Shown here one piece after another: positions 34,286 through 44,697 of a stretch of DNA of 64,000 bases. Every line of letters begins with the position of its first letter. Position 1 is the stretch's first letter. The stretch lies in sequence record NC_006883.2. The stretch is one strand, 5' to 3'. Under the pieces are notes generated by a model that searched no databases, was not told where the DNA came from, and was given only the letters and a program-made list of their open reading frames with translations. A program made the translations under genes and the position numbers.

Positions 34286-36307
34286 ATGGCTAATATTAAG
34301 AAGACATTTAATTTCCGTAATGGTGTTCAGGTTGATGATGATAATCTGATCGTAAACCAAACGGGTCTGGTTGGTATCGGAACTACTGTTCCAACTGAGG
34401 CTTTGGATGTCCGAGGAAAAGTTAAAGTTATTGCAGATCCTAATGTTACTGGATCTGGAGAGATTAATGCAACTACAGGTATAATTACATCTTTAACTGT
34501 AACCAATTTAACCGTTAGTGGAAATAATTATTCTGGTGGTGTAATTGGTGTTGGTATTAGTGTTGGAACAGCAGGTATTATAACTGCAACAGAACCAACT
34601 GGTATTGTTACTTATTATGGTGATGGTAAAGAATTATTGAATCTTCCCACATCACAGTGGTTAGATAAAGACGTAGGATTAGGATATACAAGTATATACG
34701 CTCAAGGTGGCGTAGGTGTGGGGACAGTAGATCCTCGATTTACCTTCCAAGTTAGTGGAAATAATGACTTAACTAACTTTGAAGAAGGTGTAGGTATTAA
34801 TGATAAGGGTGGTATTGTAGCGACAGGTGTTATTACTGCTACTACCTTTAAAGGACATGTTGATGGATCTGTATCTAGTGGATTATCAACCATTACACAG
34901 TTACAGTCTACAAATGCAAATGTTACTGGTGTAGTTACTGCTACTGAATTTAAAGGAGATGTTACTGGTGATGTAGTTAGTGGTGTATCAACAATCACTA
35001 CCTTACAATCAACCACGATAAATGCAGGTCTTATAAACGCTACTGGTGCAGGATTTACTGGTGCTTTATCGGGTGATGTTACTGGTAATGTTACTGGTAA
35101 TGTTAATGGTAATATTAATGCGGTAACAGGTATTTCAACACTTAATATACTTAAGATACTTGGAACTATTGATGGTGATACTGTTTCTGGTATTCTTACT
35201 ACTGGAAGATTAACTGCTGCTACTTCAACTATAGGTGTGGCAACAGCAGCATCATTAAATGTTCAAGGTAAATTGGGAGTTGGTATCAATAACCCAATAG
35301 GTGATATTCAGGTATATAAGTCAGGAATTTCTACTGTTAATGTTGTTGGTGAAGAGTTTGCTGTTCTACAATTAGGTCAGAGAGATTCGATTGGTATTGG
35401 AGCAAGCACAGCACAGTTTAAGTTTGGTGAAACTAGTCAAGAACTTGATATTATTAATGGAGATCCTGGTAGCATCAATAGTATTATTCATGGTGGTGGA
35501 TCTGCTGGTATTAATACTGGATCATTTAACTGGATATATGGTGTAAATAACAGCACACTAATGTCACTAGACTATACTGGAAAGTTGGGTGTTAATAAAC
35601 CTGATCCAGAATATCCTTTAGATGTAAGTGGTATTGGAACATTCTCAAGTGATGTTTATGTAAGAAATTCTTTAGATGTTGGTGTTTTACTGACTGTTGG
35701 TGGTAATGCAACTGTTGCTGGAACATTAGGAGTTACTAGTAGTGTGACTGTTGGTGGAGATTTAAATGTTACTGGAGTATTTAATTATCCTTCAGACGTT
35801 CCTGCTGATAAATTGCCAGATCAAATTGATGTTAGAATAAATTCTGCTGGAGTATCTACATTCTTAGGTGGTGTTAACCTTGGAGCAGTTCAAGTTGGTG
35901 GATTAAATGGAGTTATCTCTGGTGTATCCACGATTGGAATCTTAACTTCTGCGGAAAATATTCCATTAGCTATGGGTGTTTATTCACCAACAGCAAAGGC
36001 AGTTTTCAATAGACTGGGTGTTGGTAATACTGATCCTATAAATGCGTTGGATGTTACTGGTACTATTCAAGCAACTCAATATCTTGGAGTTGGTAATCAA
36101 CCAATAGGTGCTGCGGTTGACTTCTCTAATGCTGGTAGGGGACTTACTGTACCATCTTTACAGAATAGAAACTTTATGCTCCCACCAAAAGTTACTACAA
36201 CTGAGAGAAGTAACTTAGCAGGATTAGCTGCTGGTGCAATAATATACAATACTACTACAAACAAACTTCAAGTTTATAATGGATCTTCGTGGCAGAACCT
36301 TCACTAA
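34286..36307 (+). CDS. Tail fibre-like protein
   Basis: MANIKKTFNFRNGVQVD N-terminus; VGIGT..P..LDV and GIITAT.F.G repeats; GDVTGNVTG; C-terminal GAIIYNTTTNKLQVYNGSSW. Confidence 0.8.
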   Translation: MANIKKTFNFRNGVQVDDDNLIVNQTGLVGIGTTVPTEALDVRGKVKVIADPNVTGSGEINATTGIITSLTVTNLTVSGNNYSGGVIGVGISVGTAGIITATEPTGIVTYYGDGKELLNLPTSQWLDKDVGLGYTSIYAQGGVGVGTVDPRFTFQVSGNNDLTNFEEGVGINDKGGIVATGVITATTFKGHVDGSVSSGLSTITQLQSTNANVTGVVTATEFKGDVTGDVVSGVSTITTLQSTTINAGLINATGAGFTGALSGDVTGNVTGNVNGNINAVTGISTLNILKILGTIDGDTVSGILTTGRLTAATSTIGVATAASLNVQGKLGVGINNPIGDIQVYKSGISTVNVVGEEFAVLQLGQRDSIGIGASTAQFKFGETSQELDIINGDPGSINSIIHGGGSAGINTGSFNWIYGVNNSTLMSLDYTGKLGVNKPDPEYPLDVSGIGTFSSDVYVRNSLDVGVLLTVGGNATVAGTLGVTSSVTVGGDLNVTGVFNYPSDVPADKLPDQIDVRINSAGVSTFLGGVNLGAVQVGGLNGVISGVSTIGILTSAENIPLAMGVYSPTAKAVFNRLGVGNTDPINALDVTGTIQATQYLGVGNQPIGAAVDFSNAGRGLTVPSLQNRNFMLPPKVTTTERSNLAGLAAGAIIYNTTTNKLQVYNGSSWQNLH

Positions 36308-36317
36308 GGAATAATTA

Positions 36318-39300
36318 ATGGGAATTAGTGTAACCAAGGCAGGACCATATTTCGGTTCAGGTGAAATAAAGTTTAGTCAATTAAGATCTAACTTTAAGGA
36401 AACTAGTAGTGGATCTATTTCTGCTTCAGAACTTTTTAGAAATACAAATCTCTATGATAGAGAACCTATAACACCAGATTCTACTGAGAATGATCAAATA
36501 GCATCTGATCCATTTCCAGTAAGTGTATCTTGGGATACAACTTATGGACCAGCATATGTTGCTGGACAAAATTATGTGGAGGCGATGCCATATAGTACAA
36601 ATTATCCTAGAGGTTCTTTTGACTATTATTTTGGTGGTGTTAAAGTAGGAACACTTGATCTTGATACTGCTACACAGACTTACATAGAACTTGGTGATAT
36701 TAGGTATGATTCACATACTCAACAGCCAGCAGAATGGACTGTTATTGATCCTATGAGTCATATCTCTGGTCAAAATTATGTAGAACTTACAACACCTACT
36801 CAACAATTTCCTGCAGGAACCTTTAAATATTATTGGGATAGTGTTCTTCAAGGAACTCTTAATATTCAAGGTGCTACTGTTGATTATGTTGAGGTCACTA
36901 ATCAATATGGTAGTTTTAGATTTAAAGGTGGAACATTACAAGCGGATGGAACCTATTCAATCGAAAGATCTAAATTAACACAAAATTTTTATTCAATATC
37001 AAAAGTAGAACGCACGATTGGTACTGGTGGTAGTGGTCCTTTCAGATATTCTGGTGTAGGTAAGAATTTAAAAGCATCACAATTTAGAAATTCTATTAAG
37101 AGATATACTGCTAATCAATCTGGTAATGATCAATTCTTAGATATGGGTCTGAAGAGTGGTTCAGGTGGAATTGATTGGGATGGTACTAATAACTTAGATG
37201 CTTCTGGTGTTGGTGGAAATTATCAAAGAAATGTACAGAAGATAATTAATATAACAGGAATAGCGTATTCTGATGATGAAGGAACTAATGGTTCTGTAGG
37301 TGGTGGTGGAAGAGGACATACTAAAAAGGCTGCTGCTAAGTTGGTTATGCCTAATCCATTAAAAGCTTTGAATACAAGGCTTCATGTTAGTGGTGGAATA
37401 TATGGTGCTGGTGGTAAAGGTGGTTTCTTTGGTGCTAGTCATACTCCTCAAGATGAAGGTGATCCAGGTAAAGATGGTGGACCAGCATTATCAATATCAC
37501 ATGGAGGAATAGAAAGTATAACTTATATTCATGTTGAAGGTGGTAAGATATATGGTGGCGGTGGCGGTGGAGAACAGGGAATACAAGGAGAGTGGCCTGT
37601 TGCTGCTGGTGTATGTGATTTAGGTGGATATACAAGTTGTTCTGGTGGTGGAACAGTTTGTACTACTGGTGGTGGATATGTAGCTGGATATAATGAAGGA
37701 TGTCATGGTAGTGGTAGTGGTGGAAGTTGTGGACCAGGAGAAATAAGTGCTAGTTTACACATAGCAACATTACCTTGTCCTGATGGCAGTGGATATGGAA
37801 CCATTTCTGCTACTTATTGCTATACACAAACTTGTGTTACAACTCCACGTACTTGTAGTTACACTTCATATGGTAGTTATACCTCAACTTTACCAATTCA
37901 AGGTAGAGGTGGTGCTGGTGGTAATGGTGCTGCTGGTGTTCCTGGATCACCTAATTATCAAGCTCAAAGTAGTGGAAGTGCTGGAACACAAGATGTAGAT
38001 GCTAAATGTAATTCTGGTGGAACATTAGGAGGTGCTAAGAACTCAAGTCCAGGTGGTACTGGTGAAGATGGTGGACAGCATGGTTCTCCTGGTGGTTCTA
38101 ACGCTGGTAAGAGTCCTGCTGCTAGTGGATTATCACAAGGAGAAGGTGGTGGTAAAGGTGGAGCTGCTGTATGTGGACAATACTTTAAGACACCATTATT
38201 AGGCAATACTGGATCAAGTAATGTTAGAGGTACTATTGGAAATCAGTGTGATGGAACAACTTCACCACCTATTATCGTTCCTAATGCACCAACTGTTACT
38301 ATGGGTGATGTTAATTACATTAGGTTTAACTATCCTGATTTAGATGGTACACAGACTCAAACTCTAAATGTAACTGGTACTGTATCTGCTAAGTTTGCTC
38401 ATATGTGGAATGATAAGAATGATTATGGACGTGGGATGGATGGAATAAAGATATACAAACCAGACGGATCAGTTTTATGGAGTAGTGTTTTTAATGTTGA
38501 TTTCTCAGACCCAGGAAGTTCGATACCACAAACATATTACTCTCCTCAACTTACTATAACTGAAGGGATATATCCTGTTGAATTTATTAACTTAAATTCA
38601 AGAAATCAAGGTGGAACTGATTCAAATGGAAAACCTTATCTTAAAGCAGGTCATTTATTAGAAATAGGTCAGAAGATGTTTTTCGTAGATGATCATGAAA
38701 ATGATAGAAACCAAGAGGTTTATATATTACCTAATGGAACTGATACTATTTGGCAGAAATCTTATATAACAGGAACTCATGGTTCTGCTAGTGACGCTAA
38801 TGGTTGGGCAGGAGATACTTCATCCGAGTATGTTGGTATGAACCAATATTGGTCAGCATTTATGCGTAGATTAGCATACTGGGAAAATAATAGTGATCCA
38901 AAGACTCAAAGTGGTGCTGAACCTAGTTTCTTCCAAGCTTGGTCTTTCAATCCACCAATAACTAGGGGTGTTAATGAATATAGACTCAGAGCTCAATCTG
39001 ATAATGACTGTAAATTCTTCATAGATCAGACATTTCAAATTGCAGAGACTTCAAAATACGATAACAGTGGAGTTGACGTATTAGATGTACCTATAAATTA
39101 TAGTTTTGTAAATGGTGTTAACGCATCAGTTAGGGTGCAGTGTTTCAATAGACAACCAAATAATATAAGTTGGAATACGATTAATGCTCCAGGATATGTT
39201 GCTGGACAAAATTATGTAGTGTTCACAACAGCTACTACACAATATCCTAGAGGAACTTTTGAATATTATTGGGGTGGTGTTAAAGTAGGAACACTTAATA

Positions 39301-39761
39301 TTGAAGGTGCTAGTGTTACTTACATAGAAACTGAGGATGGAAATTATAGATATGATTCTCACACCCAAGTTGATCCAAATCAAAACTTCTATACAATATC
39401 AAGGATAAAGCGTAGTCCTCAAATAAACTGGAAGGAAAACCCTGCTGGTGTTGCATTTGAAATTTATTGTTATGATGATTCTGGAAATAAAGTAGTTGCA
39501 GTTGATTCTAGTCCTCTTGGTTCTGAAGGTACTGTATGGGGTGCTGCCCAATTTAGCTATTCTGTTGATAATGTTAATTTAGCAGATCCACTTCACAACG
39601 TAGATGGATTCTCCAGTCCAGTTGATCCTAGTTACAATGTTCCTAGAGCATTATCTTCTTCTGGTTATGAGATAATAGGACAACCAACAGTACCAACAAC
39701 TTATTCAGTAAGAGCTAAGAATGGTGGAGGAAGCACCACAGCAAGCAAACAACTTAAATAA
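36318..39761 (+). CDS. Gly-rich adhesin-like structural protein with repeated inserted modules
   Basis: SGEIKFSQLRSNF...ISASELF N-terminus; polyglycine motifs (GGIYGAGGKGG, GGKIYGGGGGG); Cys-rich loop; three copies of a ~60-aa module. Confidence 0.65.
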   Translation: MGISVTKAGPYFGSGEIKFSQLRSNFKETSSGSISASELFRNTNLYDREPITPDSTENDQIASDPFPVSVSWDTTYGPAYVAGQNYVEAMPYSTNYPRGSFDYYFGGVKVGTLDLDTATQTYIELGDIRYDSHTQQPAEWTVIDPMSHISGQNYVELTTPTQQFPAGTFKYYWDSVLQGTLNIQGATVDYVEVTNQYGSFRFKGGTLQADGTYSIERSKLTQNFYSISKVERTIGTGGSGPFRYSGVGKNLKASQFRNSIKRYTANQSGNDQFLDMGLKSGSGGIDWDGTNNLDASGVGGNYQRNVQKIINITGIAYSDDEGTNGSVGGGGRGHTKKAAAKLVMPNPLKALNTRLHVSGGIYGAGGKGGFFGASHTPQDEGDPGKDGGPALSISHGGIESITYIHVEGGKIYGGGGGGEQGIQGEWPVAAGVCDLGGYTSCSGGGTVCTTGGGYVAGYNEGCHGSGSGGSCGPGEISASLHIATLPCPDGSGYGTISATYCYTQTCVTTPRTCSYTSYGSYTSTLPIQGRGGAGGNGAAGVPGSPNYQAQSSGSAGTQDVDAKCNSGGTLGGAKNSSPGGTGEDGGQHGSPGGSNAGKSPAASGLSQGEGGGKGGAAVCGQYFKTPLLGNTGSSNVRGTIGNQCDGTTSPPIIVPNAPTVTMGDVNYIRFNYPDLDGTQTQTLNVTGTVSAKFAHMWNDKNDYGRGMDGIKIYKPDGSVLWSSVFNVDFSDPGSSIPQTYYSPQLTITEGIYPVEFINLNSRNQGGTDSNGKPYLKAGHLLEIGQKMFFVDDHENDRNQEVYILPNGTDTIWQKSYITGTHGSASDANGWAGDTSSEYVGMNQYWSAFMRRLAYWENNSDPKTQSGAEPSFFQAWSFNPPITRGVNEYRLRAQSDNDCKFFIDQTFQIAETSKYDNSGVDVLDVPINYSFVNGVNASVRVQCFNRQPNNISWNTINAPGYVAGQNYVVFTTATTQYPRGTFEYYWGGVKVGTLNIEGASVTYIETEDGNYRYDSHTQVDPNQNFYTISRIKRSPQINWKENPAGVAFEIYCYDDSGNKVVAVDSSPLGSEGTVWGAAQFSYSVDNVNLADPLHNVDGFSSPVDPSYNVPRALSSSGYEIIGQPTVPTTYSVRAKNGGGSTTASKQLK
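36554..39296 (+). repeat. Dispersed direct repeat inside the 1147-aa gene
   Basis: Exact 24-mers ATATGTTGCTGGACAAAATTATGT (36554 and 39194) and GGTGGTGTTAAAGTAGGAACACTT (36633 and 39273). Confidence 0.9.
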
Positions 39762-39764
39762 TAC

Positions 39765-39793
39765 TTGACACTGTTCGAGATTTCTGTTATACT
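39765..39793 (+). promoter_or_regulatory. Sigma70-type promoter
   Basis: TTGACA, 17 bp, TATACT, ending 6 nt before ATG 39800. Confidence 0.8.
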
Positions 39794-39799
39794 TTTATT

Positions 39800-40381
39800 A
39801 TGAAATTTACTCTTGCTATAGGAAACCCTCCTTATGGTGTAGGAGGGAATCTTGCTATAAAGATATTAAATAAAACTTCTGAGATCACAGATGATATTAG
39901 GTTTGTATTACCTACATCTATGAGGAAACCTTCTTGTCAGAATAAGATCAAGTCATATCTTCATTGTGAAGTTGATGATGATCTAGATGCTGCTACTTTT
40001 CCTGGTGGAATAAGTGCAGTAAAACAGTATTGGAAAGTAAAAAACACATCGAGATTTGCAAAAGGGGTGAACGAGATTCCTATGCACAGGGAGCATCCTG
40101 ATTTTGAATTTCTAGATTACAAAGATAGATTTGAGGCAGATGTTTTTATTGGTGAGTATGGATGTGGTCCTAGTGGAGTAGTAAAGACTGAGGATTTTAC
40201 ACACTACGCTAAAGGACATCACTTTCTAAGTGTTAAATCACCAGAAGTAATTAAGAATCTACTAGAGTTTGCTCCTAAGTTTAGAGAAGTAGCAACAGTA
40301 ACTAATGGTCGATACCATTTCGGTAAGAATGATTTGATTACCACTTATATTAAATGTTTAGATGAAAAAGAACAAGCATAA
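39800..40381 (+). CDS. Amino-DNA methyltransferase, catalytic/TRD half (motif IV NPPY)
   Basis: Begins MKFTLAIGNPPY, then IRFVLPTS; no SAM-binding motif I. Confidence 0.75.
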   Translation: MKFTLAIGNPPYGVGGNLAIKILNKTSEITDDIRFVLPTSMRKPSCQNKIKSYLHCEVDDDLDAATFPGGISAVKQYWKVKNTSRFAKGVNEIPMHREHPDFEFLDYKDRFEADVFIGEYGCGPSGVVKTEDFTHYAKGHHFLSVKSPEVIKNLLEFAPKFREVATVTNGRYHFGKNDLITTYIKCLDEKEQA

Positions 40382-40760
40382 TATACAAACTGGATCTAAT
40401 ATTGAGCGATCTGATGAAAGAATAAAAGAAACCCAAGAGGTATTCACTCCTCGTGAGTTGGTAGAATTGATGATAGATGAGATTGCGGTTTCGTTATTGA
40501 AAGATCCTAGCAGCAAATTTATTGATAATTGTGCTGGTAGTGGCAATTTCTTAATTGGACTAAAGGAACGACTCTGCTTGTATCATAGTGAGAAGCACGT
40601 TTTAAATCACATGCTTTACGCAGTAGAATTGCTAGAGGACAACCATAAGGAACTCTGTGGTCGTTTGGGTGTGACAACTCATCATCCGCACTATGTTTGT
40701 GCAGATGCCTTAGAATACGACTATAGTTTTGGTGAACCGATAGGAGTGTTGAAATTTTAA
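40362..40760 (+). CDS. Amino-DNA methyltransferase, SAM-binding half (motifs X, I, II, III)
   Basis: EVFTPRELV, FIDNCAGSGNFL, LYAVEL, CADAL; no motif IV. Confidence 0.78.
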   Translation: MKKNKHNIQTGSNIERSDERIKETQEVFTPRELVELMIDEIAVSLLKDPSSKFIDNCAGSGNFLIGLKERLCLYHSEKHVLNHMLYAVELLEDNHKELCGRLGVTTHHPHYVCADALEYDYSFGEPIGVLKF

Positions 40761-40824
40761 TTTATATAACTAACTCTGTTAGGATTGTAGGACAGGCTTT
40801 ATAATTTTTTAAGAACCAAGGGGG

Positions 40825-40853
40825 TTGCACACCCTCTTTTTTTATGCTACAAT
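40825..40853 (+). promoter_or_regulatory. Sigma70-type promoter
   Basis: TTGCAC, 17 bp, TACAAT with extended TG. Confidence 0.7.
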
Positions 40854-40904: not shown

Positions 40905-42293
40905 ATGACAAACAAAGGTAATTTCTTAAGAACCTTCGGGGTCTTAGAAACAGTTTCAGATGTAAAAGCTGTTGAATCTAATTATTTTCCTCATCCTAGA
41001 TGTAAGGATGGAATGAACGCTCTAAGAGAAAAAGTAAGTTTTATTCCTCGCAAAGAATTTAATAGTTGCTCGTTTATAGACACTAGAATTGTTCGTGTTG
41101 GTGATTTTAGTCTTCGTAAAAATGTAGGACGTAAGAAAGGTAACAATCCTGAAATTCTTGGTAGAGTTGCTCGTAGTTTAGAAAAGGGATATAACACAGT
41201 TAAACTTCCACCAATAGTTCTTTATAATGAAGAGATTGATGACATTAATGATTGGTTAGTAAATGGTAATCACCGTTGGTTGTGGTATGTGGAGAATGGA
41301 ATTGAATGGATGTTGGTGGATGTTTATGTTGTAAAAGATGGTTATGATGTAGAGGATGTTTGTGATGAGGTTGGTTTATTACATCAACCACAACCCGATG
41401 GAACAGAATCTAATTACTACGATTACAAGGCAAGAGGGTTGGCATTTGTTAAACGTCAGGAAGAAAAGAACATTAAGGTCACTCAGGATATTGTTAATAA
41501 GTGGGTTGATACTTATGCTATAAATGAAATTGCTGTCAATCGCACAAATCTCAAAAAATATATTTTCCAAGAGGAAACTAATAGTTCTGATTTAATAAAC
41601 TATTCCTCTAGAAATAGTAAAGGTGCTAGAAAAAAGGGTGGTATTCTTTATGAATTTTTGATGCACAATATTCATATTTACGATTCTGATGTGCAACTTC
41701 CAAATCACATTAAAGTTGTAGATCGTCTTTATGAAGGAAGTCAAAAGGTTTGGGTAAGAGATTTTCTGTATCCTTTTTTAATTAATATGTCTCAAGGTAG
41801 GAAGACTCGCATTAATTTTTATATTAATACAAGCTCAAAAAATGTTAATGATGGTAGTGATGTTTTAAAGTGCATTTCTAACCGCATTAAGGAACTTGAG
41901 AATATATTGATTGGTCATGAACTTGCATTTTCTGATAGTGATTATAATGCTAGAGATTATGTGATACTTGGTAAGAGACCCTATCAAATTGAAAAAGTTG
42001 ATAAGGAGGGTGAACTTCAAGATCTTACGTTTGCTACAAAACCAGAGAATACTCCTGATATTACCCTTAGAAAGGGTACTAAAAACCATACTAAGTTTCT
42101 ACTACAGAAAAAATTTGGTTTTGATGCCTTTACATTAGATCAAGCGTATAATGCAGTACGTGATGAGCGTTATGCACTTACTAATTTTAAGAATGAGGCA
42201 AGTTTTAAAGGAACTATTCGTGGCGAATTGCAATCTCTTCGTGATGATGGTGTTTTATATCCTTACGGAACTGGTGCTTATCAATTTAACTAA
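40905..42293 (+). CDS. ParB/Srx-like protein with C-terminal DpnI-type winged helix
   Basis: LPPIVL...LVNGNHR (ParB-like); FTLDQAY...KN...FKGTIRGELQSLRDDGVL...GTGAY (DpnI-C wH pattern). Confidence 0.65.
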   Translation: MTNKGNFLRTFGVLETVSDVKAVESNYFPHPRCKDGMNALREKVSFIPRKEFNSCSFIDTRIVRVGDFSLRKNVGRKKGNNPEILGRVARSLEKGYNTVKLPPIVLYNEEIDDINDWLVNGNHRWLWYVENGIEWMLVDVYVVKDGYDVEDVCDEVGLLHQPQPDGTESNYYDYKARGLAFVKRQEEKNIKVTQDIVNKWVDTYAINEIAVNRTNLKKYIFQEETNSSDLINYSSRNSKGARKKGGILYEFLMHNIHIYDSDVQLPNHIKVVDRLYEGSQKVWVRDFLYPFLINMSQGRKTRINFYINTSSKNVNDGSDVLKCISNRIKELENILIGHELAFSDSDYNARDYVILGKRPYQIEKVDKEGELQDLTFATKPENTPDITLRKGTKNHTKFLLQKKFGFDAFTLDQAYNAVRDERYALTNFKNEASFKGTIRGELQSLRDDGVLYPYGTGAYQFN

Positions 42294-42368: not shown

Positions 42369-43559
42369 ATGCCATTACGTCCACATCAATCTCTTGCTTT
42401 GGGTGCTATGGCAAACCATACCAAGGGGCAAATCATAGTACCTACTGGAGGTGGTAAAACAAAATGCATGATACAGGATGCTAAAAGAGTATTTCTTACG
42501 CAAGATATTGCAACTATCGTTGTAGTTGCTCCACGCATCCTATTGGCAGAGCAACTATGCTCTGAGTTTATGGAAGAAATAAATGTAAAGGGACGCATTA
42601 AAATAATGCACGTTCATAGTGGTGAGACTAGGCATTTTTCTACGACTAATGTCGATGATATTAGATACCATAATATGTTTTGCTATGATAATAATAAGCA
42701 TCAGTTAATTTTTACTACATATCACTCACTTCATAGAATACAAGAGAGTAATATTGTAGTGGATACTGTTTACTTTGATGAGGCACACAATAGTGTTAAT
42801 AGGAACTTCTTCCCTTCTACTAAATTTTTTGGAACTGGAGGTGCTAGTAGGAACTTTTTCTTTACTGCTACTCCTAAGCACAGTCTTACTCCTTTCAAAG
42901 CTGGAATGAATGATAGAGAGGTATATGGTGATGTAATTATTAATGTTCCAGCACCTAAGTTAGTTAAAGAGGGTTACATCCTACCACCTAAAGTTCATGT
43001 ATATAAGAGTCGTTTACTTAGAAAAGATGAGATCTATTCTGAAGTAGAGTCAGATCAAATGATTAGTGCTATTGATAATTTAGAAGTGGATAAGGTTCTT
43101 ATCTGTGCTAAATCTACTAAGCAAATCATTGGTCTTCTATCTCAATCTGAGTTCTGCTATGAGTTGAATATGCGTGGTTATTCTTGGATGACTATCACAT
43201 CAAGGACAGGTGCTATTATTAATGGACAGAAGGTAGGTAGAGATGAGTTCTTTAGAACTCTTAATGCTTGGGGTAAGGATGATGAGAAGAAATTTGTGGT
43301 ATTGCATCACAGTATATTGGCAGAAGGTATAAATGTTAAAGGATTAGAAGCAGCGTTGTTTATGCGTAATATGGATTTCATTACCATTTCTCAAACGATT
43401 GGTAGAGTAATTCGTTTGGGTAATGATAAGAAGACACATGGTAAAGTATGTGTTCCTGTGTATAATAATGTAGGAATCTCTACTGCCAGAAGAGTTGAAG
43501 CAGTTGTAGATACAGTATTCAATCAAGGTCAACCAGCAATTTCAGTAATTACAAGATGA
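42369..43559 (+). CDS. Superfamily 2 helicase (type III Res-like)
   Basis: VPTGGGKT (Walker A), FDEAHN (motif II), FTATP (III), ILAEGINV (V), QTIGRVIR (VI). Confidence 0.92.
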   Translation: MPLRPHQSLALGAMANHTKGQIIVPTGGGKTKCMIQDAKRVFLTQDIATIVVVAPRILLAEQLCSEFMEEINVKGRIKIMHVHSGETRHFSTTNVDDIRYHNMFCYDNNKHQLIFTTYHSLHRIQESNIVVDTVYFDEAHNSVNRNFFPSTKFFGTGGASRNFFFTATPKHSLTPFKAGMNDREVYGDVIINVPAPKLVKEGYILPPKVHVYKSRLLRKDEIYSEVESDQMISAIDNLEVDKVLICAKSTKQIIGLLSQSEFCYELNMRGYSWMTITSRTGAIINGQKVGRDEFFRTLNAWGKDDEKKFVVLHHSILAEGINVKGLEAALFMRNMDFITISQTIGRVIRLGNDKKTHGKVCVPVYNNVGISTARRVEAVVDTVFNQGQPAISVITR

Positions 43560-43732
43560 ACATTAAAGAAGATGAATACATGTCTAGTGATGTGTGGAAA
43601 AGAAATATTCCACCAGTTACTAATTTTAAAAGAGGAAGTGCCTACAATCAATTTGGTATGTGGGTTATGTGGATTTACTATCTTATAATTCCTACGATGA
43701 TAATAAGATTAATTTGGGATTTAAACAAATGA
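43556..43732 (+). CDS. Small membrane protein (58 aa; not in ORF track)
   Basis: MNIKEDEYMSSDVWKRNIPP...GMWVMWIYYLIIPTMIIRLIWDLNK; ATGA-coupled at both ends. Confidence 0.55.
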   Translation: MNIKEDEYMSSDVWKRNIPPVTNFKRGSAYNQFGMWVMWIYYLIIPTMIIRLIWDLNK

Positions 43733-44697
43733 GAGACACTATTCTATTTGGAGATTGTAGAGATACACTCAAAGAGTTTGATGAGAAAGCAAGGATGTGT
43801 GTTACATCCCCACCTTACTATGGTCTGAGAGACTATGGTGGTGAAGAATCACAGATAGGACAAGAGCAAAGTCCTGAAGAGTTTATTGATGAGTTGGTCA
43901 AAGTATTCAGAGAAGTAAGGAATGTGCTTACTGATGATGGAACTTGTTGGGTAAACTTGGGTGATAGTTATTACAATTACAGGAAGGATGGATGTATTCC
44001 TAAACAAACATTTGCAAAGAATAGACAAGATCTACCTGAAACAACACCCAGAAGATCTAATAAGTTAAAAGGATTGAAAGAGAAGGATCTTATTGGTATT
44101 CCTTGGATGTTTGCGTTTGCTATGAGGGCAGATGGATGGCATTTGAGACAGGATATTATATGGCACAAACCTAATCCTATGCCTGAGAGTGTGAGAGATA
44201 GATGCACTAAGGCACATGAATATATCTTCTTGTTCAGTAAGCAGAAGAATTACTTCTATGATAATGAAGCAATCAAGGAGGATGCTAAAGATTGGGGAAC
44301 CAGAGATAGGAGTAAAGGTAAGTACACAAGTAATAATGATTATGGACAGACTCCACACTCAGGTTTAACTAAGAGTTATGCTAAGAAGAACAAAAGATCA
44401 GTATGGAGTGTAACAAAGAAACCATACAAGGGAGCTCACTTTGCAACATATCCACCCGATCTGATTGAACCCTGTATCCTCGCAGGAAGCGAGAAAGGAG
44501 ATATTGTGCTTGATCCATTTATGGGTAGTGGAACTACTGCTGCGGTGGCAAAATCGCTAGGTAGAGATTATATTGGATGTGAATTGCACGAAGACTATGG
44601 TGATCTTATACGCAAAAGAGTAGGTGAGTATGAACGATCTGTGCCAGTTATGGAAGTGACACAGTCACCTTTACTTGATGCTATAAATGGGTTATAA
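43729..44697 (+). CDS. Beta-class DNA methyltransferase, probably N4-cytosine
   Basis: VTSPPY (motif IV), IIWHKPN, HFATYPPDL, VLDPFMGSGTT (motif I). Start moved to ATG 43729. Confidence 0.92.
   Translation: MRDTILFGDCRDTLKEFDEKARMCVTSPPYYGLRDYGGEESQIGQEQSPEEFIDELVKVFREVRNVLTDDGTCWVNLGDSYYNYRKDGCIPKQTFAKNRQDLPETTPRRSNKLKGLKEKDLIGIPWMFAFAMRADGWHLRQDIIWHKPNPMPESVRDRCTKAHEYIFLFSKQKNYFYDNEAIKEDAKDWGTRDRSKGKYTSNNDYGQTPHSGLTKSYAKKNKRSVWSVTKKPYKGAHFATYPPDLIEPCILAGSEKGDIVLDPFMGSGTTAAVAKSLGRDYIGCELHEDYGDLIRKRVGEYERSVPVMEVTQSPLLDAINGL

Follow-up and report, generated by a model that had tools for sequence, protein, structure and literature searches.

In phage P1, DarB combines a methyltransferase with a helicase. 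The ParB domain is supplied in P1 by DdrB, and adenine methyltransferases, helicases of the superfamily 2 (SF2)/SNF2 type and ParB domains recur in the polyvalent proteins that phages and conjugative elements encode (PMC5512222). Outside partition, ParB domains have been reported to act as nucleoside triphosphatases (NTPases) and/or non-specific nickases, and to be found together with adenine methyltransferases and helicases of the SNF2 type (PMC5512222). A second group of related systems is built around the winged helix (wH) of the DpnI family, an experimentally shown sensor of N6-methyladenine (m6A) in several nuclease fusions; an archaeal virus encodes one of these fusions and directs it at competing viruses (PMC11037411, PMC10101028). 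The fusion partners described for this wH are nucleases and NTPases, with no mention of ParB, and the GATC/m6A motif is carried by only about 10% of the wH fusion proteins, the rest being of uncharacterised specificity (PMC11037411). Here we describe gene PSSM2_038 (038) of Prochlorococcus phage P-SSM2, a T4-like cyanomyovirus, whose product joins a ParB/sulfiredoxin (Srx) fold to a DpnI-family wH. The window analysed, 64 kb in length, is identical to bases 1-64000 of the P-SSM2 genome (NC_006883.2).

The 038 protein consists of four modules: a ParB/Srx fold, a ParB/KorB-like helical region, an alpha/beta middle domain and an optional DpnI_C-family wH. Its gene is part of a conserved cassette in which the two halves of a split adenine methyltransferase (036 and 037) precede it and an SF2 helicase (039) follows. 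We tentatively favour the interpretation that 038 is a nucleoside triphosphate (NTP)-gated, DNA-associated partner of the methyltransferase and the helicase, with the wH as an optional tether. Few viruses of the ocean are as abundant as the T4-like cyanophages, yet a function has not been assigned to the majority of their non-core genes; one such 'hypothetical protein' is now defined as a four-module protein in a methyltransferase/ParB-like/helicase cassette.

With respect to the wH, 038 has the same fold, used as a portable module, as DpnI (PF17726; structures 4ESJ and 4KYW), FcyTI, HhiV4I/HHPV4I, Ahi29725I and VchI. Its partner is different: type IV enzymes with such a wH carry PD-(D/E)XK, HNH, GIY-YIG or PLD nucleases or a McrB-type NTPase, whereas in 038 it is joined to a ParB/Srx fold. 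Unlike in the DpnI-type enzymes, moreover, the wH is encoded by a lytic phage beside an adenine methyltransferase, and it is often found on a separate open reading frame (ORF) or is absent. To the nucleases and McrB-type NTPases that are joined to DpnI-family wH domains, a ParB/Srx protein is thus added as a further kind of partner. No description of a fusion between a ParB/Srx fold and a DpnI-type wH was found in the literature searched, in line with an initial annotation of the window, made from the sequence alone, which had called this architecture undescribed in cyanophages.

With the ParB, KorB, Noc and PadC clamps, 038 shares the N-terminal fold and helical region, an invariant Gly and Arg in the phosphate-binding loop and a strand-loop-helix core, PPIV...G..R. 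In contrast to these clamps, it has NGNHR where they have GERRxR, it lacks a ParA partner and a known parS (no parS search was made), and its alpha/beta domain and wH stand in place of the C-terminal dimerisation domain of ParB. As in the polyvalent proteins (PMC5512222) and in P1 DarB/DdrB, adenine methyltransferase, helicase and ParB domain are jointly encoded by a phage, with no ParA and in a conflict or modification context. Unlike in the polyvalent and Dar proteins, the domains of the cassette reside on separate polypeptides, not in a single giant one, and lie behind sigma70-type, putatively early promoters where the Dar type is expressed late or associated with the virion; a metallopeptidase domain is lacking, and a DdrB-type ParB model had no match among the Pfam results for the cassette.

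Table 1. Positions of 038, its modules, its neighbours and the associated expression signals in the 64-kb window (aa, amino acids; nt, nucleotides; AdoMet, S-adenosylmethionine; AF2, AlphaFold2).
Feature	Position	Strand	Description
PSSM2_038 / YP_214270.1	40905..42293	+	462 aa, four-module protein; annotation 'hypothetical protein'
ParB/Srx-fold domain, then ParB/KorB-like helical region	40977..41594 (aa 25-230)	+	Foldseek, motif conservation
Alpha/beta middle domain of 038	41598..42044 (aa 232-380)	+	AF2 model, conservation; 150 aa
Accessory DpnI_C-family wH	42060..42290 (aa 386-462)	+	Pfam, Foldseek; recognition helix KGTIRGELQSLRD
PSSM2_036	39800..40381	+	Catalytic half of split N6-adenine DNA methyltransferase; NPPY at aa 9-12, then ~180 aa
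PSSM2_037	40362..40760	+	AdoMet-binding half (motif I, ...DNCAGSGNF...); overlaps 036 by 20 nt
PSSM2_039	42369..43559	+	SF2 helicase (ResIII + Helicase_C); Pfam ResIII E 7e-18, phrog_16 E 1e-60
PSSM2_041	43729..44697	+	Beta-class N6_N4 methyltransferase, SPPY motif; Pfam N6_N4_Mtase E 3e-58
Sigma70-type promoter-like site before 036	39765..39793	+	TTGACA-17-TATACT, 11/12 matches, with TG
Terminator-like hairpin and T7 run	40818..40838	+	Loop contains -35 box of 038 promoter
Sigma70-type promoter of 038	40825..40853	+	TTGCAC-17-TACAAT; homologous site of relatives GGGGTTGACA-N17-TATATT

Modules of PSSM2_038

The ORF proposed in the initial annotation was present exactly as given there (462 aa), and so were the two strings quoted for its domains, KLPPIVL...LVNGNHRW (aa 100-125) and FTLDQAY...KGTIRGELQSLRDDGVL...GTGAY (aa 408-460). 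In a search of 50,697 phage records, 038 was confined to P-SSM2, P-SSM5 and one single-cell viral contig of marine origin. Metagenomic homologues numbered 179 at E<=1e-3, most of them 436-441 aa long and 38-55% identical. An exhaustive profile search of 1.84 billion protein cluster representatives yielded only 51 clusters for the family, and none of the 185,579 bacterial and archaeal genomes scanned, one per species, contained a relative. Given these homologue counts and the lack of cellular relatives, 038 is a genuine and conserved gene, and its family is narrow and restricted to phages. That it is a chance ORF or a pseudogene was rejected on the basis of its conservation across more than 170 proteins. 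PADLOC and NCBIfam models returned nothing for 038. The AF2 model of the full protein, built with 26 homologues, had a mean predicted local distance difference test (pLDDT) score of 79 and a predicted template modelling (pTM) score of 0.45, and the low pTM of this prediction is typical of several independently placed domains. The P-SSM2 protein itself is divergent: in a tree of the 038 core its terminal branch measured 0.85 changes/site, compared to a median of 0.05 for its relatives, and it carries a lineage-specific insert at about aa 236-246 (...SRNSKGARKKGG...) which is of low confidence in the predicted model.

In the N-terminal module, KLPPIVL forms a strand of the ParB/Srx domain while the loop and helix that contain LVNGNHRW provide a motif of the DGxxR type. 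Foldseek comparison of this part with the PDB gave as top matches KorB (8qa9), ParB (7bm8), the N-terminal part of pNOB8 ParB (5k5d), Noc, PadC, Atu1540, 1vk1 and Srx, with probabilities of 0.9-1.0 and a best E value of 5e-4; the ParB and KorB alignments extended over 160-197 columns. Against the predicted viral structures of BFVD, the best matches (E 2e-12 to 1e-7 over 315-395 columns) were proteins of 320-400 aa from other T4-like cyanophages, two of which are named 'ParB/Sulfiredoxin domain-containing protein'. These proteins, found in MED4-213 (M4QDH6), S-H9-1, S-T4, P-SSM3, P-SSM7 and ACG-2014e, have the same succession of ParB/Srx, helical and middle domains as 038, from which they differ by the lack of a C-terminal wH and by their low identity (8-18%). 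In a broad alignment of 25 sequences, with relatives down to 13-21% identity, G95, G121, R124 and D173 were the sole invariant residues. NGNHR (aa 120-124) has the Gly-x-x-Arg phosphate loop of ParB/Srx proteins, for which distant relatives show DGF(T/S)R or DGYNR. The ParB/Srx fold ascribed to 038 in the initial annotation is thus borne out by the structural matches in the PDB and BFVD together with the invariant G121 and R124. Sequence searches of the PDB were less informative. With the broad profile the best trace was SbnI at a non-significant E value of 0.15, in which a PPIV...DGxxR...V.V core was aligned to a segment with DGVHR in SbnI; pyruvate oxidase and Psu, which came up with family profile A1, were discarded as noise (E>0.3).

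The C-terminal wH of P-SSM2 038 gave a weak match to Pfam DpnI_C (PF17726; E 0.014, 16 bits), which lies below the gathering threshold of 23 bits, and phmmer did not reach DpnI from this C-terminus alone. Its relatives are closer to the model: 14 of the 20 aligned family members that possess this C-terminal region matched DpnI_C, with a best E value of 1.8e-5. By structure, DpnI ranked above every other wH in Foldseek, with 4kyw_A as the best match (72 columns, root mean square deviation 2.1 Å, 26% identity, probability 1.0) and 4esj matching likewise. Both lines of evidence confirm that the last 75 or so residues form a DpnI-type wH, as initially annotated.

In short members of the 038 family (345-384 aa), a separate ORF of 72-83 aa coding for the wH often lies downstream, frequently overlapping the stop codon. 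One of these stand-alone copies (73 aa; L007:9059-9277) exceeded the DpnI_C cut-off (33.8 bits, E 4e-8) and found DpnI by phmmer (E 0.0096). Over the 59 loci compared, with 8 kb searched on each side, the wH was fused in about 25 and had its own ORF in 15, while about 13 lacked it; it was attached to or adjoined 038 in 41 of the 59. The fused forms make up a single clade in the tree of the 038 core (support 92/91); outside this clade the wH has an ORF of its own, and at least six losses of it have occurred there. Finally, a wH of the cyanophage type (hhalign probability 98.9) was found in P0144, a metagenomic protein of 483 aa (L062:257-1708) whose N-terminus of about 360 aa showed neither similarity to 038 nor a Pfam match. 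From the pattern of fusion, separation and loss, and from the P0144 fusion, the wH is a discrete, portable and dispensable accessory of 038. The contigs of P0144 and of P0139, a distant relative of 038, are shorter than 2 kb, too short to show gene context.

Between the helical region and the wH lies the alpha/beta middle domain, which had escaped the initial annotation. Its invariant residues include R274, E277, Q280, R285, D286, F287, Y306, R358 and D366. When modelled alone with AF2, it reached a pLDDT of 87 and a pTM of 0.83. Foldseek found no credible neighbour in the PDB (best E 0.25, probability 0.3), and the LarE fragments returned with these values were rejected; 038 hence contributes a confidently modelled domain of 150 aa without structural relative in the PDB.

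A conserved cassette and its promoters

The methyltransferase upstream of 038 is split, with its halves in swapped order, since NPPY (motif IV) is located in 036 and the AdoMet motif in 037. PADLOC models for MTase_II matched the motif IV region of 036, and the protein also matched phrog_5172 (E 9e-70). For 037, the Pfam N6_Mtase model scored 25.9 bits (cut-off 20.4) over profile positions 21-86 of 311, and phrog_4376 matched with E 3.5e-70. The split arrangement is kept in more than 50 contigs (among L002-L060, L063 and L064) and also in S-CAM7, S-SKS1 and Bellamy.

In the 59 loci, compared by tblastn with the proteins of the window, the gene order 036-037-038-039 was found in essentially every sufficiently long locus, corresponding to about 55 cyanomyovirus contigs, with L058 as the exception. 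The helicase gene 039 lies downstream of 038 in nearly all loci which extend far enough. Gene 041 is linked only loosely to the cassette, close homologues being located near 038 in few loci. The placement of 038 between a split methyltransferase (036, 037) and a helicase plus methyltransferase unit (039, 041), which had been proposed initially, was therefore correct, and its co-occurrence with methyltransferases is documented by the linkage to 036/037 in about 55 loci; the conserved four-gene cassette as such had not been noticed.

The promoter-like site in front of 036 is one of only seven such sites in the 64-kb window and marks the probable start of the cassette. A further promoter belonging to 038 itself, likewise proposed in the initial annotation, was found directly upstream of the gene, with TTGACA-N17-TATATT as the form in related loci. 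A simple promoter scan alone did not find promoter-like sites more frequently than expected by chance, and the promoter claim thus rests on conservation: in 24/24 aligned loci (alignment A4) the -35 box keeps its TTG and the -10 box its TAnAnT without exception, and the site is unique within each locus. As the -35 box is situated inside the loop of a terminator-like hairpin, terminator and promoter overlap, an arrangement that is repeated in L028 and L057.

At about +1 after the -10 box follows a conserved leader, GTGGTTGAGG..., which has local inverted repeats (GAGAA-GGAT-TTCTC in P-SSM2, GGGAA-GGAT-TTCCC in L028) and occurs, within each locus, nowhere but upstream of 038. RNAalifold predicted no common RNA structure in the promoter/leader alignment, and the leader hairpins are accordingly regarded as local features only. 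The leader could be an operator or a hairpin in the 5' untranslated region.

Function of PSSM2_038 and of its winged helix

The wH had been taken initially for a domain that binds Gm6ATC. In the recognition helix of DpnI, residues E228, K229, R231 and Q232 form two methyl pockets and read GATC (PMC3424567). The P-SSM2 wH has G, T, R and G at these positions and thus departs from the set expected of a Gm6ATC-reading wH. Among 83 distinct cyanophage wH copies aligned to the DpnI segment, the same positions are occupied by G (77/83), T (71/83), L (64/83; R in 9/83, P-SSM2 included) and A (52/83) or R (23/83). The scaffold residues I230, L234, Q235 (83/83), L237, R238 and D239 are kept in the cyanophage copies, and 038 shares them with DpnI together with the G.G.Y hairpin. 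The assignment to the DpnI family therefore stood whereas the Gm6ATC specificity did not: with the set of four DpnI contact residues replaced, this specificity cannot be deduced for 038. Reading of m6A in another sequence context is possible in view of VchI, whose DpnI-like wH binds G6mAG with V in place of K229 and R in place of Q232 (bioRxiv 10.1101/2025.05.22.655678), i.e. specificity may be retuned and not abolished. Stand-alone cyanophage wH copies have L and R at the corresponding two positions.

It had further been suggested that 038 tells host from phage DNA by adenine methylation. Almost all cyanobacteria possess DmtA, the methyltransferase for GATC, but picocyanobacteria are the exception and generally lack it (PMC4390886). 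Host Dam methylation is hence an unlikely signal, and any mark read by the wH of 038 is more likely to be phage-written. In the 64-kb window GATC is neither avoided nor enriched (291 observed vs 297 expected; 0.98). In the literature on methylation in Prochlorococcus or cyanophages, no methylome was found for the NATL1A/NATL2A hosts or for P-SSM2.

We infer that 038 would use NTP, act on DNA and cooperate with 036/037 and 039, and that its wH might have some preference for methylated DNA. As in other ParB/Srx proteins not involved in partition, the protein may be an NTP-binding or NTP-hydrolysing, DNA-associated subunit that serves as a switch or clamp or as an NTP-regulated nickase. Jointly with the 036/037 methyltransferase and the 039 helicase, it would act on DNA in the early phase of infection. 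The wH would be an accessory DNA tether which possibly prefers adenine-methylated DNA but does not have the Gm6ATC specificity of DpnI. Should the wH be no more than a DNA tether, the cassette would still represent a compact and as yet unstudied unit of DNA modification or anti-restriction.

Several observations weigh against this interpretation. No match to Pfam ParB_N, ParBc_2 or GmrSD_N was obtained for 038 itself, and the distant relatives P0161 and P0139 matched the Pfam ParB models at E values of about 0.02 and 15 bits, under the cut-offs. The NGNHR loop lacks the GERRxR box by which CTPase clamps bind CTP. The 036/037 pair is found without 038 in S-CAM7, and a 037-type gene without 038 in ACG-2014f, so the methyltransferase does not need 038. 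In the sister contigs L014 and L015, the 038 proteins are 93% identical (94% in the wH) while 036 is only 44% identical; with 038 alike and 036 divergent, the wH is not visibly tuned to the neighbouring methyltransferase. The middle domain could be the real effector of the protein. Lastly, the sigma70-type promoters argue for early expression rather than for a Dar-like packaging into virions.

We consider it doubtful that 038 is a type IV-like, modification-dependent effector, as which it had first been annotated, with the wH directing a ParB-type nuclease or nickase to adenine-methylated DNA. Such an effector would have as its targets co-infecting methylated phages (superinfection exclusion) or DNA in a particular replication state. 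The idea draws on the proven m6A sensing of DpnI-family wH domains in nuclease fusions, including the archaeal-viral one (PMC11037411, PMC10101028), on the L and R of stand-alone copies where VchI has V and R, on the DNA nicking by some ParB domains (PMC5512222) and on the adenine methyltransferases present in many cyanophages. However, searches with Pfam, PHROGs, NCBIfam, PADLOC and Foldseek revealed no nuclease domain (PD-(D/E)XK, HNH, GIY-YIG, PLD) and no McrB-type NTPase with McrC in 038 or in the cassette, and an effector function can therefore only be surmised. The residues for the methyl pocket and for GATC are not conserved, Dam is missing from the host group, the phage shows no avoidance of GATC, and its own adenine methyltransferase is encoded next door. 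The wH, moreover, was lost repeatedly while the rest of the protein was kept. Of the reader-effector proposed initially, what stands is a possible reading of m6A outside GATC; no nuclease domain was detected for the effector part, and the wH is dispensable.

A ParB/KorB-like regulator or organiser of phage DNA, active in transcription control or condensation and equipped with a generic wH without methyl preference, is an unlikely alternative; such a protein might regulate its own gene via the conserved sequence just downstream of the promoter. The best PDB matches of 038 are the N-terminal and DNA-binding regions of KorB and ParB, its promoter is followed by the GTGGTTGAGG... element with inverted repeats, and the specificity residues of its wH are unlike those of DpnI, all of which would suit a regulator. 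Such a role would not explain, though, why 038 is so strictly linked to the methyltransferase and helicase genes, and neither the GERR motif for CTP nor a common leader structure by RNAalifold was found. A ParA partner is missing as well, no ParA-like gene being annotated or detected between positions 35700 and 48800.

Comparably improbable is a writer-reader-motor module in which 036/037 would put an adenine mark on replicating phage DNA, a wH retuned away from GATC would read the mark, and the ParB/Srx part as an NTP-gated switch would load onto the marked DNA and recruit or license 039. If true, the phage could by such a module distinguish its own, methylated DNA from that of its picocyanobacterial host, with possible roles in host-DNA degradation, replication or packaging. 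More generally, a wH that reads adenine methylation would constitute a lytic-phage reader beside its own writer, in hosts mostly without DmtA, and offer a route to the discrimination of own and host DNA.

The loop motif of Srx is GCHR. NGNHR, with its G-x-H-R form, is nearer to Srx and SbnI (DGVHR) than to GERR of ParB, and SbnI, the best though non-significant sequence trace in the PDB, is both a kinase and a DNA-binding regulator, but we regard it as highly improbable that 038 is a ParB/Srx kinase or phosphotransferase of the SbnI, SerK or sulfiredoxin type which acts on a small molecule or protein and has a regulatory link to DNA only: the likeness does not extend beyond a core of 40 residues, the structural matches reach into the DNA-binding region of ParB, the partners in the cassette are all DNA enzymes, and a DNA-binding wH is attached or adjacent in the majority of the loci.

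Neighbouring genes and palindrome content

The 036 homologues of L002 and L015 are of a longer form (457-470 aa) which is 35-44% identical to the short one. In L063, a locus of Synechococcus phage ACG-2014f (NC_026927.1, positions 35896-39843), a 037-like gene is followed, in this order, by gp052, an Eco57I-type methyltransferase (gp053) and a helicase 34% identical to 039. The product of gp052, an unassigned ORF of 200 aa, occupies a slot comparable to that of 038.

Gene 041 is annotated as 'dam: DNA adenine methylase' in one record and as 'cytosine methyltransferase' in another. Its product gave only partial CcrM-like matches and does not belong to the MethyltransfD12 (Dam) family. A true Dam unit was thus rejected for 041, a beta-class SPPY enzyme outside the Dam family.

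Other palindromes than GATC are unevenly represented in the 64-kb window. CCGG, CGCG and GCGC have 0 copies each, compared to Markov expectations of 23, 7 and 16, respectively; strong depletion is also seen for AGCT, at 0.33 of expected, and for CATG, at 0.42. Such a scarcity of palindromes looks like restriction-site avoidance.

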